In this document: positions 8,206 to 31,945 of the stretch, in pieces
Position numbering within the stretch: the stretch's first letter is position 1
How the letters are laid out: the number at the start of each line of letters is the position of its first letter
Position numbers and translations under genes: made by a program
Sequence record: OR142618.1
Direction: 5' to 3' (one strand)
Length of the DNA: 64,000 bases
The notes under the pieces: generated by a model
What the model was told of the DNA's origin: nothing
What the model saw: the letters and a program-made list of their open reading frames with translations, nothing else
Database searches by the model: none

Positions 8206-8487
8206 ATGGATTTTATTTTCCTACTACAACATAACACTTCTATTATATTATATCGTAATAGTATTATAGAATTATACACAGAAGACGAAATGCCAGTAAT
8301 AGACATAGATATAACAAATTCTATGTTCATATATCAAGGTATTTTTAATGACAAAACTGCAATACTCTATCTACAACAAAATACACACAGTATAGGTATA
8401 GAATCATCAAATTCTTATTATATGATAAGAATGAGAAATATGTACCATAGAAACGTTTATTATATTATAACACATGGATTATATTAA
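8206..8487 (+). CDS. small-ORF repeat-family protein, duplicate copy 2
   Basis: MDFIFLLQHNTSII ... AILYLQQNTHSI. Confidence 0.8.
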   Translation: MDFIFLLQHNTSIILYRNSIIELYTEDEMPVIDIDITNSMFIYQGIFNDKTAILYLQQNTHSIGIESSNSYYMIRMRNMYHRNVYYIITHGLY

Positions 8488-8758
8488 ATTTATCTCCGCA
8501 GAAGTAAATCAAATTAAAAAATCCACCCACCCTGGCAGCACCCGCGACGGCTTAACACTATATAACGTACATGACCAACCTATAATAGAAATAAAGATCC
8601 AAAAAATAATATCCCGTGCATATGTGCGTGCAAACTACGATAAGTTGTGTAATGAAATCTGCATTCTTTATATACAAAGCCAAACAACTTTAATATCTAC
8701 CACACGGAACACACTAGTAATCTTTACTTCCCACTATATAGTTCACTCTATCACATGA
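8474..8758 (+). CDS. small-ORF repeat-family protein
   Basis: MDYIKFISAEVNQI ... ICILYIQSQTTLI. Confidence 0.7.
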   Translation: MDYIKFISAEVNQIKKSTHPGSTRDGLTLYNVHDQPIIEIKIQKIISRAYVRANYDKLCNEICILYIQSQTTLISTTRNTLVIFTSHYIVHSIT

Positions 8759-16709: not shown

Positions 16710-17110
16710 GCTTACTAAACAGTTACTTGTTAAGTAAGTTAAAAAGTCGGTAACAGTGATGTTACAGGATACACAGGCAAATACGGTTGGAAGATGCTGT
16801 GTAAAGAACAAATATCCAGCTCATTCCTAGGCATTATAGCCTACACATTATATTTGAATGGGCATAAAAACTTCCAAAGAACCTTCGAAATTTTCTCATA
16901 GGATAGTGTATTAGAAGGAATGCACTATCAGGAAGCTGTAGGTGATGGTTGCTATCCCAGACAGTCCTTTCTAAAATACTTTAATATGATATAAAGTTCT
17001 ATGCAACCGTATACATGCTGTAAGATATTAGATTACACCATGTATTAAACGTAAAAGCAAAACCTTCAGTTAGTAATCTCGCAGTGAAGGGGGTAGGTGA
17101 GTGCTACCCA
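16710..17110 (+). ncRNA. putative large structured RNA or 5' leader (ncRNA-1)
   Basis: ORF-free; upstream TAGACA and extended TGcTAATAT; multiple helices with G-U pairs (see findings). Confidence 0.6.
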
Positions 17111-17152
17111 AACTCAACAAACAACTAATGGTCTAGAAAAGGTATAGTATAC

Positions 17153-17560
17153 ATGCAACATACTCACATTCGTTTCTACAACGAAGAAACTCAACAGATC
17201 GATAACCGCCGTGGCGCTACTGTTGCCTGGGAAACCGCCGGCAACAAGATCCGTATTTCCGTAGCAGCATGTTCGGAAATGGATAACTTCAACCGCAAGA
17301 CCGGACGTGAACATGCTGCTAGCCGTCTCGAAAGTGGCGACTACATCGAGTTTAACGGCACCGAACTTCTTAATGCACAGATGTCTTCTGTAAGTCATGT
17401 GCAGTCTGAAGGTCTCGTTCGTGCTATGTGCTTCTTGCTAGCACAAGGCAAAGGCGATCTATATTACCCGGCAAGCGAAGGTCAGCTTCGCAGCGAAGCC
17501 GAGTGCAATAGCTACAACGCCCTCGAGTACCTGAAACACCAGATGGGCATTCATCAGTAA
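17153..17560 (+). CDS. hypothetical protein, host-like codon usage
   Basis: 135 aa, GC-richer; phage-type motif ACSEMDNFNRKTGREHAASRL. Confidence 0.8.
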   Translation: MQHTHIRFYNEETQQIDNRRGATVAWETAGNKIRISVAACSEMDNFNRKTGREHAASRLESGDYIEFNGTELLNAQMSSVSHVQSEGLVRAMCFLLAQGKGDLYYPASEGQLRSEAECNSYNALEYLKHQMGIHQ

Positions 17561-17573
17561 GTATTCGGCCATT

Positions 17574-17616
17574 CGGAATTGCGATTTAGGTTTTGGAATT
17601 CTAAATCGCAATTCCG
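17574..17616. repeat. perfect 16-bp inverted repeat, 11-nt loop
   Basis: cggaattgcgatttag / ctaaatcgcaattccg. Confidence 0.9.
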
Positions 17617-17801
17617 GTTTCCAAATTCAATTTTAGGCACAAACTCGGATCCGCATTTGCATTTTGCATTTACATTTTGTGTTCTGAGTGTATATGCAAA
17701 ATGCAATCGCGCATGTTGTCGATGCATTGGCTAATCTTTTATTTTTGATAGTTTAGAAAAGATTAAGAACAGAAACTATCTGTAAATTAATAAAAATAAC
17801 A

Positions 17802-17830
17802 TTTACATTACATACACATATGCATATACT
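17802..17830 (+). promoter_or_regulatory. sigma70-type promoter
   Basis: TTTACA-17-TATACT with A-rich upstream sequence. Confidence 0.7.
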
Positions 17831-17836
17831 ATATAT

Positions 17837-18115
17837 AAGTTATGCGCTGTTGCATACGTAAATACCTCCTATGTTGTTTAGATATGTCGATTCTGGTATA
17901 ACCAGATAGACCTAAGGATGATGCTAGTGATTCCTTAGTATTGTATATTCTAGCTGAGTATAAAGAGTAAGGGGCTTTATACAAATAACAATTCCTTAGG
18001 CAAGATATACCGCTCCGTTGTGCTGACGAGCATAATTTGCCCAGATACAGAGCACGTGACTGGTCTGAGGAGCATTTATATCAGAAAGGCAGACTTATGT
18101 TTGCCTTTCTTTTTG
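17837..18115 (+). ncRNA. putative small RNA (ncRNA-2)
   Basis: Lies between a promoter and an intrinsic terminator, has no credible ORF, forms several hairpins and carries ACCUCCU near the 5' end. Confidence 0.6.
18084..18115 (+). terminator. intrinsic terminator
   Basis: gaaaggcagac-ttat-gtttgcctttc followed by T-tract. Confidence 0.8.
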
Positions 18116-18129
18116 AGCAGATATTCTCT

Positions 18130-18300
18130 TATTCACTTCCTTATTCATTTCTTTATTCATCTCTATTTCGTTTGTCACTTCCTTATTCATTTCTTTATTC
18201 ATCTCTATTTCATTTGTTATTGCAAATAAGACTAATTCTTATTTGCGTTTGTAATTTCATTTGTTATTGCAAATAAGACTAATTCGTATTTGCATTTGCA
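18130..18300. repeat. pyrimidine-rich direct repeats
   Basis: cttccttattcatttctttattcatctct x2; catttgttattgcaaataagactaattc x2. Confidence 0.85.
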
Positions 18301-18513
18301 ACGAAAAAGAATATGCAAATAATAACTAATCTTATTTGCATTTGCACTGCCTAGTATATGGATTGGTAGCATACTTGGAAATGGATAGTAAATAAGTAGT
18401 TGATTTGTTTATAAATTATACTTCTACACCATACAGATTGACCTTGCTATATATAGCTCGTGCGCGTGTATACAAGATGGTAAAAAATAATTTAAAAATA
18501 TTTTAAAAAATGC

Positions 18514-18637
18514 TTGACTTTCCATTACTACGACCTTAAAGTGCGAACTGTAGACGCAGTGTGTAGAGCGCTACATAGTAAGCAACGCAGAAAGTAAACA
18601 AAAAATGCTTGACGCAATGCAAACTAGGCTCTACACT
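18514..18637 (+). promoter_or_regulatory. tandem sigma70-type promoters with A-tract UP elements
   Basis: TTGACT-17-TAAAGT (18514-18542) and TTGACG-17-TACACT (18609-18637), both preceded by aaaaatgc. Confidence 0.75.
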
Positions 18638-18720
18638 GTATACAAGCTTAAGGGGTAGGTGCCCCGAAAGTGTAGTAAGTAAACAACATAATCCTTCCAT
18701 CAGCTACAGAGGTATACAAC

Positions 18721-19425
18721 ATGTCCGTACATATCACTCGTCAACGTACCGACAAACAGCACGTCCTGGCACTGGCAATCAACGGCGTGGTCATCGGCCA
18801 GACCATGGCTACTTACACCACCCCGAGCAAGCGCACCTGGTCGGCGACCGCCGAAGTCGAACTGGCAGACGGCACTGTCGTTCAGTTCGAACAGAAGGAA
18901 GTGTTCAGCGCGATCCGCATCACCCGCGAAATCGAGCAGGCGCTCGACGGCAAGGAACTGGCGGCCAAGTACACCCCGGAACCGAAAGTTCCCGGGCAGA
19001 AGGGTCCGAAACCGCTCACCGACGAAAGCCGGCTCAGCAACGCGATCGCGATCGTCAAAGCGGCCATCACCCACACCGGCTTCGACGAAGCTACCCTGGT
19101 GTTCGACGGGGTCGACAAGGCCAACTTCGAGCAGAACAGCACCTCCGTCGGCAACAAGCTGCGTCGCCTGGGCTTCGTCTTCGAACTCGGCGCCGGCAAG
19201 GCGAACAGCGGCAAGGGCTTCCTGATCAACCGCAAAGCGCAGGCCGAGGCAGAAGCTGCCGAACGCAAGGCCAAGCGCGACGCCGAGAAGAAGGAACGCG
19301 AAGAAAAAGCGGCGGCTGCCAAGCGCGAAGCTGACGAACGCAAGGCCAAGCGTGAAGCCGAACGCGCCGAAAAGGTCGCTGAAAAGAACGCAGCGATCGC
19401 CGGGGCAGCGCAGGAAAGCAAGTAA
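18721..19425 (+). CDS. paralog A of a three-member GC-rich family; K/E/A-rich C-terminal tail
   Basis: Shared domain NGVVIGQ...TPSKRTWSA...EQKEVFSAIRITR; GAGG RBS; terminator follows. Confidence 0.9.
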   Translation: MSVHITRQRTDKQHVLALAINGVVIGQTMATYTTPSKRTWSATAEVELADGTVVQFEQKEVFSAIRITREIEQALDGKELAAKYTPEPKVPGQKGPKPLTDESRLSNAIAIVKAAITHTGFDEATLVFDGVDKANFEQNSTSVGNKLRRLGFVFELGAGKANSGKGFLINRKAQAEAEAAERKAKRDAEKKEREEKAAAAKREADERKAKREAERAEKVAEKNAAIAGAAQESK

Positions 19426-19440
19426 TTGCCCAACTGCGCC

Positions 19441-19469
19441 AGAAGGGGAGCAATAGCTCCCCTTTCTTC
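19441..19469 (+). terminator. intrinsic terminator
   Basis: gaaggggagc-aata-gctcccctttc. Confidence 0.8.
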
Positions 19470-19494
19470 ATGACCACACAATCTATATACTACT

Positions 19495-19731
19495 ATGTCT
19501 TTAACTATATTTTCTATATCAGCTAATTTGTATACAATAACTTGGTATTCTGCGCAACTGACACAATGGTGTTATATAGACATAATAACACGCGACGCTA
19601 ATATTTTTATAACCTATCCATTTTATAATAACATATTTGTATCTAAAATTAGTTCTAATACAATAATTGAAGAAAAAATTGAAGAAAAATATGAACACTA
19701 TATTAGAGATATGTCGTGGAATAAGAAATGA
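19495..19731 (+). CDS. hypothetical protein
   Basis: 78-aa AT-rich ORF. Confidence 0.5.
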   Translation: MSLTIFSISANLYTITWYSAQLTQWCYIDIITRDANIFITYPFYNNIFVSKISSNTIIEEKIEEKYEHYIRDMSWNKK

Positions 19732-31407: not shown

Positions 31408-31436
31408 TTTACAGCATGCATAGTTTTACGTATTAT
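31408..31436 (+). promoter_or_regulatory. sigma70-type promoter
   Basis: TTTACA-17-TATTAT. Confidence 0.65.
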
Positions 31437-31442
31437 AAACAC

Positions 31443-31945
31443 ACAAAGCAATACAGCATAACGCATTGTAAGCAACACTAAACGGGAGACACCGTCCCGC
31501 AAGCAGCCCGCCCGCGATGTTCGCGGGCTGCGGCAAACAGGTGTACAAGGTCTAGTAACGTGGAAGGCGCAGCATACCTTTCCTTAAATCGGAAATCGGT
31601 CAATGACGTACCTGCCCCTGGACACTGCTAGACCTTGCTGCTACAGGCGGGACAGCTACAAAGGTACACTGTATGTATCTATGCTTTACCCCGCTTTGTA
31701 GCAGGTCTTAAAACGGTCTACTGGCATATGCCTTAGTGCTAGTAGGAATCATTAACCTAAAACTATTATATGCTTCCTGGAGGTGAAGAGTATGCCGCCG
31801 CAGCATTAAATATACATTATGATGATGATAATTATGAATGCCGAAACACCGCTTCGATTCGTTTAAAAGACAGATGTCTGAATCGAATGTTTTTGGGCAA
31901 AAAGGTCCCTTAGATGGGATTTTTTTGCGGCTGCTAACTAGCAAA
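31443..31945 (+). ncRNA. putative ~500-nt two-domain structured RNA (ncRNA-4)
   Basis: GC-rich and ORF-free; nested helices gtcccgc/gcgggac, caaggtctag/ctagaccttg, gcagcccgc/gcgggctgc, gctacaaag/ctttgtagc, tgctagt/actagca. Confidence 0.7.

Follow-up and report, generated by a model that had tools for sequence, protein, structure and literature searches.

A structured non-coding RNA gene of the Pseudomonas jumbo phage Callisto is the counterpart of PA5oct ncRNA001

Results

The RNA gene and its locus

We analysed a stretch of 64,000 nucleotides from record OR142618.1 (the window; positions are counted from its first letter), in which a preliminary description, made from the letters of the sequence, had proposed a small non-coding RNA (sRNA) on the plus strand at 17802–18115. 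The 2.5 kb around this RNA gene gave a 100% match to Callisto (OR142618), a PA5oct-like Pseudomonas jumbo phage of the genus Wroclawvirus, and 97–99.6% identity to ten further Wroclawvirus records (family Arenbergviridae), including vB_PaeM_PA5oct and MIJ3. In the GenBank entry of PA5oct (MK797984), the gene at this place is EST35_0036, a 'putative lncRNA' (long non-coding RNA) named ncRNA001, located at 8263..8498 on the + strand with the remark 'annotation based on RNA-Seq data'. A pairwise alignment, gapless before 18132, places these coordinates at 17857–18092 of the window. The RNA unit shows 99.4% identity to that of PA5oct over 330 nt, with two differences across the aligned 17560–18120. 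The flanks are also those of PA5oct, namely a 135-amino-acid gene (EST35_0035) and a structural protein gene (EST35_0038), both on the + strand as well. The RNA gene is the Callisto copy (ortholog) of ncRNA001, the sister-phage counterpart of one and the same gene; locus, strand and neighbours are shared, and nothing biological differs between the two.

The RNA gene is therefore real but previously published, and is not the discovery of a new RNA. Stranded RNA sequencing (RNA-seq) had revealed four transcribed regions that lack a plausible open reading frame (ORF), and ncRNA001 was among them (Lood et al. 2020, PMC7318152). The report gives its coordinates and read shares only; it proposed no function, and ncRNA001 resembled nothing in GenBank besides MIJ3 (PMC7318152). 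No function of ncRNA001 had been assigned in the later literature that we searched. The counterpart region of PA5oct falls inside an annotated long terminal repeat of ~39 kb (MK797984).

The features of the RNA gene and its immediate surroundings are listed below; statements on conservation refer to a selection survey of ten genomes aligned over 17000–19500.

17650–17801, + strand: upstream region of high conservation, containing a long imperfect palindrome (I4; arms 17649–17674 and 17689–17714) and an AT-rich tract just before the −35 hexamer; recognised by the conservation of 17650–17836
17802–17830, + strand: sigma-70-type promoter-like site, TTTACA (17802–17807), 17 nt, TATACT (17825–17830); 10 of 12 positions match
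17855–17829, − strand: MQQRITYI*, an 8-codon frame behind AGGAGGT and 8 nt; judged a chance frame, outside the unit
17837–17856, + strand: predicted precursor part at the 5′ side, running from the predicted start up to the mature 5′ end as published
17857–18115, + strand: non-coding RNA, the ncRNA001 ortholog with the rest of the terminator; recognised by identity, RNA-seq, fold and conservation
17864–17870, + strand: ACCUCCU, a heptamer resembling the anti-Shine-Dalgarno sequence, invariant in the ten genomes and at a distance of 7 nt from the mature 5′ end
17892–17906, + strand: hairpin UCUGGU-AUA-ACCAGA, present in every predicted fold
17911–17999, + strand: switch-like region, from repeat and folding, in which CCUAAGGA (17911–17918) is predicted to pair with either AUUCCUUAG copy around the stable hairpin 17944–17962
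18012–18073, + strand: 3′ domain from folding, with hairpin 18018–18035 (GACG loop), a second arm 18040–18067 and an alternative closure GCUCC 18012–18016 / GGAGC 18069–18073
18066–18079, + strand: internal partner UGAGGAGCAUUUAU, predicted to pair with 17858–17870 in a closing helix adjoining the terminator
18083–18115, + strand: intrinsic terminator with a 12-bp stem (18083–18094 / 18099–18110), UUAU loop and U run to 18115 (inverted repeat I14)

Expression of the RNA

In the published stranded RNA-seq, ncRNA001 accounted for 2.40, 5.07 and 4.68% of the phage reads at 5, 15 and 25 min (in turn the early, middle and late stages of infection; Table 1 of PMC7318152). The plus-strand transcript on which the preliminary description depended is thus present. 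We also examined three public RNA-seq runs of one 2020 study, which were used as assembled contigs and come from PA5oct-type phages, not Callisto itself; the contigs served for placement only, exact ends and levels not being readable from them. High-depth contigs lay inside ~17854–18097 and stopped in the 18037–18097 bin. The stretch 18098–18524 held few contigs, all of low depth, and coverage returned at ~18525–18590, ahead of the next gene. In 17610–17731, which separates the RNA from the upstream gene, the contigs were of low depth in all three runs, and the RNA unit therefore stands alone. Contig coverage at the 5′ side (17732–17914) varied between the samples.

Adapter junctions on the RNA were found at 17858, 17892, 17903 and 18027. 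Their polarity matched that of junctions on the flanking plus-strand genes (17141, 17306 and 18562), in agreement with the published + strand of the RNA. The RNA is hence a high-abundance species at all three sampled infection times, is transcribed from the + strand and terminates at the hairpin. The claim of a stand-alone plus-strand non-coding unit ending at a terminator was in this way borne out by the match to ncRNA001, the stranded RNA-seq and the contigs together.

Promoter, 5′ end and terminator

The promoter-like site was found where it had been described. It is the best in 17000–19000, is invariant across the ten genomes, and has a predicted start at ~17835–17838. Position 17836 was covered by contigs in the RNA runs, mostly in the run designated X2. 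The PA5oct annotation begins at the equivalent of 17857, and the adapter junction at 17858 was seen in run X2. The early promoters of the phage share AAAAAATGCTTGAC, and the candidate promoter of the RNA is not of that class. PA5oct depends on the host RNA polymerase, as rifampicin blocks phage production (PMC7318152). The host enzyme would then transcribe the RNA, probably from the sigma-70-type site at 17802–17830, and about 20 nt would be trimmed from the 5′ end of the primary transcript.

The strong terminator, previously placed at 18084–18115, is present with a stem that starts at 18083; its predicted free energy is −17.9 kcal/mol, it is invariant in the ten genomes, and AUUUAUAUCA lies directly 5′ of it. 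This terminator would end the RNA. The size of ~280 nt given in the preliminary description needs revision: the mature RNA is ~258 nt (17857/8 to ~18115), and a ~280-nt form starting from ~17837 would exist only as a precursor, if the promoter is used.

Conservation and distribution

The variable columns of the alignment were distributed as follows.

Intergenic DNA, 17561–17649: 13 of 89 columns (14.6%)
Upstream region, 17650–17836: 1 of 187 columns (0.5%), the one at 17836
RNA, 17837–18115: 3 of 279 columns (1.1%)
Downstream non-coding DNA: 35 of 461 columns (7.6%), and 80 gapped columns
Upstream gene: 15 of 408 columns (3.7%), 13 of them at third codon positions
Downstream gene: 44 of 705 columns (6.2%), 40 of them at third codon positions

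All three variable columns of the RNA fall in its mature part (17857–18115, 259 columns), and the difference between the RNA and the downstream non-coding DNA is significant (Fisher P 4e-5). These shares indicate that the RNA and its upstream region are constrained like first and second codon positions, that is, the RNA and ~190 nt upstream of it are under strong purifying selection. The conserved 17650–17836 probably does not belong to the abundant RNA but is regulatory DNA. Four sites vary in all (17836, 17903, 17996 and 18063), and T17996C occurs in five of the ten genomes and was also seen in RNA run X1 and a metagenome contig (L011). In a contig from a pitcher-plant metatranscriptome, one difference was found within the RNA, as against 15 differences and a 12-nt gap in the 340 nt beyond it.

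Relatives of the RNA were sought in several collections. A blastn search with 11-base words in 50,697 phage records retrieved only 11 Wroclawvirus records at ≥99%, besides chance matches of 32–35 nt, and tblastn of both flanking proteins retrieved the same 11 records only. No relatives were found in IMG/VR with both flanking proteins and two RNA patterns, and a metagenome pattern scan yielded a single contig, 99.5% identical. Rfam gave no match at the gathering score in the whole window. When the threshold was relaxed to E up to 10 on 17400–18700, nothing fell on the RNA (17837–18115), the hits being spurious ones of miRNA type in flanking palindromes and AT-rich DNA. Thus, no covariance-model match of the RNA to 6S, RsmY/Z, CrcZ, PrrF, riboswitches or ribozymes was obtained. 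A scan for tRNA and transfer-messenger RNA detected none, and blastn with 7-base words revealed no paralog in the window. Across these collections, the RNA thus occurs in the genus Wroclawvirus only.

The pitcher-plant inquiline metatranscriptome contained three contigs of a PA5oct-like phage, corresponding to 17182–18709 of the window. The genus accordingly also occurs outside sewage and clinical sources; one of these contigs spans the terminator and may be derived from DNA.

Predicted fold

Folding of 17837–18118 gave a minimum free energy (MFE) of −83.9 kcal/mol (z-score −3.8), a stability that no sequence out of 200 shuffles reached. Four hairpins were common to every prediction: 17892–17906, 17944–17962, 18018–18035 with its GACG loop, and the terminator. 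The sole variable site in the first of these, C17903T of phage PAC2, changes a G-C pair to G-U, so that the pair is kept. G18063T, found in PA5oct and phi30-2, either improves the hairpin 18048–18054 / 18061–18067 or breaks a pair of an alternative arm, according to our own reading of the pairing.

The preliminary description had also noticed that cctaagga can pair with either of two copies of tccttag. This is correct in the sequence: CCTAAGGA lies at 17911–17918, and two exact copies of ATTCCTTAG lie at 17930–17938 and 17991–17999 as a 9-nt direct repeat (D9). Folding supports two predicted states, in which the partner of CCUAAGGA is the distal UCCUUAGG or the proximal UCCUUAG. With U at 17996, the distal helix had a predicted probability of 0.75–0.99, reaching 0.99 when the RNA was folded from 17837; C17996 alone gave the proximal hairpin a probability of 0.90–0.95. 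The proximal hairpin and the closing helix are both predicted to gain from the published 5′ end or from C17996. C17996 also fits a local hairpin of AGGGG (17970–17974) with UCCCU (17993–17997). In the PAC2 combination (U17903 and C17996) folded from 17837, the distal helix was still ahead, at ~0.7.

The 5′ end has two predicted states as well. In one, it forms a weak AU hairpin at 17859–17880 with UCCU in the loop. In the other, it enters the closing helix, GUAAAU/AUUUAU and CUCCU/AGGAG, which comprises 11 bp around a small internal loop and has a predicted energy of −9.3 kcal/mol; the MFE fold contains this helix if the RNA starts at 17857 or carries C at 17996. The closing helix was spotted because the RNA's own 3′ segment ranked among the top matches of our target scan. 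Within the RNA, the 5′ end has no better partner, and 5% of shuffles (P 0.05) and 1.7% of the 22-mers of the window paired as well. We regard these computed statistics as suggestive, not compelling.

The anti-Shine-Dalgarno-like heptamer

ACCUCCU is indeed present near the 5′ end of the RNA, and presumably the heptamer is the whole of its identity to the 3′ tail of the host 16S rRNA. The plus strand of the window contains ACCTCCT once, and 1.77 copies are expected from base composition; a motif at chance frequency is not statistical evidence of function. In the survey of ribosome sites, which covered 158 mechanically predicted gene starts of the window, the core AGGA was found at 36 starts, GGAG at 21, GGAGG at 2 and AGGAGG at 1.

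The motif has an internal partner, GAGGAG at 18067–18072 (pairing at 18068–18072), in the predicted closing stem. With U17996 and folding from 17837, the motif was predicted to be unpaired at ~97% and to lie in a hairpin loop; with C17996 alone it was unpaired at ~20–40%, so that the predicted exposure ranges overall from ~97% to ~20%, depending on the allele and the 5′ end. The earlier expectation that the motif be conserved and exposed thus held for conservation, and for exposure it held in some of the predicted states. The motif may be a seed, for instance for host messages, and a purely structural role is plausible.

The minus-strand frame and other reading frames

On the minus strand, AGGAGGT stands 8 nt before the ATG of MQQRITYI*, as had been described. 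The frame is the last 8 codons of a mechanical 51-amino-acid minus-strand frame (17829–17984) that has no PHROG match. These 8 codons are located opposite the −10 hexamer and the presumed precursor, for the most part upstream of the mature RNA, and T17836C replaces their tyrosine with cysteine in all nine sister genomes. The sole minus-strand promoter-like site, at 18381–18353, is in a stretch nearly free of RNA contigs. All adapter junctions seen were of plus polarity; the contigs cannot exclude rare antisense RNA. Early transcription was described as being almost only on the Watson strand in the 2018 preprint version of the PA5oct study. By our own estimate, the odds of an ATG 5–10 nt past a given heptamer are ~1 in 10, and an 8-codon frame is expected in AT-rich sequence. 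The minus-strand mini-ORF looks like a chance by-product, its strong Shine-Dalgarno sequence being the complement of CCUCCU.

On the plus strand, the 19-codon frame MRCCIRKYLLCCLDMSILV (17842–17901) begins ~5 nt past the predicted start and encodes four charged residues. It is very unlikely to be a gene: it has no Shine-Dalgarno sequence, and the published mature RNA no longer contains its ATG.

The records of Ettore, Paride, PAC2, Cassandra and Deifobo contain short minus-strand 'hypothetical proteins' that are chained across the equivalents of 17100–18700, in some of these records even opposite the real plus-strand genes. This chain, which includes the 51-amino-acid frame, looks like systematic over-annotation; it is absent from the calls for PA5oct, phi30-2, phi30-3 and Callisto.

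Discussion

The RNA is probably a trans-acting riboregulator of some kind, a view that we hold with some confidence. Our best single guess at its action, which we put forward tentatively, is base pairing of the Hfq type through a partly masked 5′ end. The guess is drawn from the layout: the RNA appears to have its own promoter, a 5′ end that is single-stranded or weakly paired, an AU-rich stretch by the terminator hairpin and a U tail. At the level of motifs this is the arrangement of Hfq-type sRNAs, with an own promoter and an intrinsic terminator ending in a U tail, and the contigs stop at that terminator. According to this proposal, the RNA would act in trans as an Hfq-type base-pairing regulator; its 5′ end, including CCUCCU, would be the seed and would be partly masked by the internal GAGGAG in the closing helix, and the alternative pairing of CCUAAGGA with UCCUUAG would set how often the seed is free. 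The explanation as a whole, comprising a copy of ncRNA001 as a stand-alone structured RNA gene of ~258 nt, the promoter, trimming and terminator described above, and the Hfq-type action, is one that we would believe or doubt with about equal readiness. A more specific version, which we consider improbable, is a self-masking translational silencer. Its CCUCCU seed would be held by GAGGAG, would be freed by the partner change of CCUAAGGA or by 5′ processing, and would block the Shine-Dalgarno sites of defined host messages, with U17996 and C17996 representing different resting states in this model. The likelihoods that we attach to Hfq-type action and to Shine-Dalgarno blocking sit inside that of a riboregulator and overlap, and the likelihoods of the several readings are not meant to add up to certainty.

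Several observations weigh against Hfq-type action or against the gene structure that we propose for it. The published 5′ end, 17857, is 27 nt past the −10 hexamer, which is too far for a direct start; the primary transcript is trimmed, or another promoter is used. The ncRNAs of PA5oct were listed as having 'no known promoter' (PMC7318152). In run X2 only, among the three, contigs of high mean depth reached past the −35 hexamer, to at least 17784 (range 17732–17853); an additional start used only at certain times could account for this, as could an artefact of taking depth from contigs. Complementarity to targets above chance, as would be expected of an Hfq-type sRNA, was not found for the 158 start regions of the window. 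Pairing of 17857–17885 with these regions (RNAduplex) was no better than that of shuffles (best −19.1 against a shuffle mean of −18.5 kcal/mol, P 0.4), and the same was true of the fifth-best duplex (P 0.33). The chance frequency of ACCUCCU has to be counted here as well. With only four variable sites, no helix is backed by compensatory change, and T17996C, carried by half of the isolates, puts an A-C mismatch in the distal helix. Finally, a length of ~258 nt, at least five hairpins and very high abundance look equally like a protein-binding RNA.

Such an RNA would act as a decoy or platform, titrating or recruiting a protein such as Hfq, an RNase, a ribosomal protein or the 30S subunit, and CCUCCU/GAGGAG would then be the GC-rich core of the closing stem. 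We judge this possible and rather unlikely. The very high abundance throughout infection, the size and number of hairpins, the closing helix linking the published 5′ end with the terminator base, the lack of excess complementarity to phage ribosome sites, and conservation over the whole length and not merely over a short seed all speak for it. On the other hand, no match to an Rfam family of protein-binding RNAs, such as 6S, RsmY/Z and CrcZ, was obtained with E values of up to 10 admitted, and by eye the RNA contains only two GGA motifs and one AAnAAnAA motif, with no partner protein indicated. A sponge of the known RsmA or Hfq/Crc type was rejected for having too few of these motifs. The heptamer could instead make the RNA a general blocker, or a mimic of the 16S 3′ end, whose exposed ACCUCCU would bind the Shine-Dalgarno sequences of many mRNAs or compete with the ribosome and so switch off translation. 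The 7-nt identity to the anti-Shine-Dalgarno core near the 5′ end, the predicted exposure in the loop of the U17996 allele and the abundance of the RNA would suit such a role. However, the heptamer is at chance frequency, GGAGG occurs at just 2 of the 158 sites, the pairing is no better than that of shuffles, and the motif is not constitutively exposed, since with C17996 and the published 5′ end it is predicted to be mostly paired to GAGGAG. In addition, non-specific action would strike the phage's own messages. We therefore think it improbable that the RNA is such a blocker, and the ribosome-binding-site blocking or ribosome-decoy action originally suggested for ACCUCCU finds no support in these results.

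Two further explanations are less probable again. As a cis-acting leader or attenuator, the RNA would use its alternative pairings to govern read-through of the terminator; the presence of CCUAAGGA with two UCCUUAG copies, and of a terminator at the end of a long untranslated RNA, might suggest this. However, 18098–18524 is nearly free of RNA contigs in the three infection samples and consists of repeats and palindromes, and the next real gene is ~600 nt on (18721), preceded by tandem AAAAAATGCTTGAC promoters of its own (18505 and 18600), coverage resuming only there. We consider this explanation very unlikely. The slightest chance of all falls to a small-protein mRNA, encoding MRCCIRKYLLCCLDMSILV, or an antisense pair of the type I toxin-antitoxin kind involving MQQRITYI. 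The perfect AGGAGGT before the minus-strand ATG, and a plus-strand frame starting just after the predicted start, are what could be said for it. Type I toxins are hydrophobic and have ~18 to 60 residues, whereas MQQRITYI consists of 8 polar residues; its frame lies under the promoter, its tyrosine is cysteine in all the sisters, and no sign of minus-strand RNA was seen. The plus-strand frame in turn lacks a Shine-Dalgarno sequence, loses its ATG in the mature RNA and carries the four charges. The antisense pair that had been contemplated for this locus is accordingly very unlikely.

Among known systems, Hfq-dependent sRNAs of Gram-negative bacteria and of phages and prophages, such as DicF and the prophage anti-sRNAs AgvB and AsxR, are the closest to the Hfq-type regulator that we favour. 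They share with this RNA an own promoter, a 5′-proximal candidate seed, an AU-rich stretch by a terminator with a U tail, and the lack of an ORF. This RNA differs in being longer and more structured than most of them, in having no Rfam relationship, and in a complementarity to phage sites that is not above chance. Type I toxin-antitoxin pairs (Ibs/Sib, hok/sok) likewise combine an abundant RNA with a short opposite-strand frame that has a strong ribosome site, but the frame here is of 8 polar codons, is unconserved, gave no sign of being transcribed and is situated under the promoter, not the RNA body. The RNA may also be likened to rnaC and rnaD of T4, stable small RNAs without assigned function in a large virulent phage. 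ncRNA002 of PA5oct (window ~31408–31945) is, like ncRNA001, an abundant, stable, structured, non-coding and phage-encoded RNA with no assigned function; it lies within the same long terminal repeat region and is highly expressed (PMC7318152), but shows no sequence similarity to this RNA.

Jumbo phages are candidates for phage therapy, and most of their early functions are unknown. Being among the most abundant transcripts of PA5oct and conserved like first and second codon positions, ncRNA001 is very probably important to the phage. The published coordinates and read shares are extended here by a candidate promoter and the complete terminator, by predicted folds and the predicted closing helix, by figures for conservation, and by the T/C17996 site, which is predicted to flip the fold. 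The GAGGAG partner offers a clean compensatory-mutation test of the role of the motif, and the existing isolates with U17996 or C17996 are ready material for comparing the two alleles.

Features of the flanking DNA

The DNA on both sides of the RNA gene is rich in repeats. Upstream, a perfect 16-bp hairpin at 17574–17616 follows the gene 17153–17560 at the place where contig depth drops, and is likely the terminator of that gene. In Cassandra, its loop (17590–17600) has seven changes and both arms are intact.

Right after the terminator of the RNA, a tandem array at 18106–18217 is built of a 42-nt unit of 12-nt sub-repeats (TTCTTTATTCAT-like). The copy number varies: PA5oct and MIJ3 have one additional 42-nt unit, Deifobo has a 30-nt deletion and Cassandra a 6-nt insertion. 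The array is annotated in PA5oct as the 'extensin-like protein' gp037, whose ATG (18097) is inside the terminator loop, and the 'extensin-like' frame at 18097 has no PHROG match. The near-absence of RNA contigs over the array suggests that the gp037 ORF is probably spurious and that the array may be a DNA-level element.

Three copies of a ~27-bp palindrome (TGCAAATAAGACTAATTCTTATTTGCA type) are located at 18207–18346, downstream of the RNA gene, and a related, ATTTGCAT-rich palindrome is located upstream at 17649–17714. The element TTTGCATTT(A/G)CA occurs at 17663, 18289 and 18335, and ATATGCAAA at 17692 and 18311. Palindromes of the TGCAAATAAGA...TCTTATTTGCA type thus flank the RNA gene, which is bracketed by operator-like sites. 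Further downstream, ahead of the gene at 18721, AAAAAATGCTTGAC (an A-tract and a TTGAC −35 element) occurs in two exact copies at 18505–18518 and 18600–18613, 95 nt apart, an arrangement in keeping with tandem early promoters of the class TTGAC/TATAATA that is known from PA5oct.

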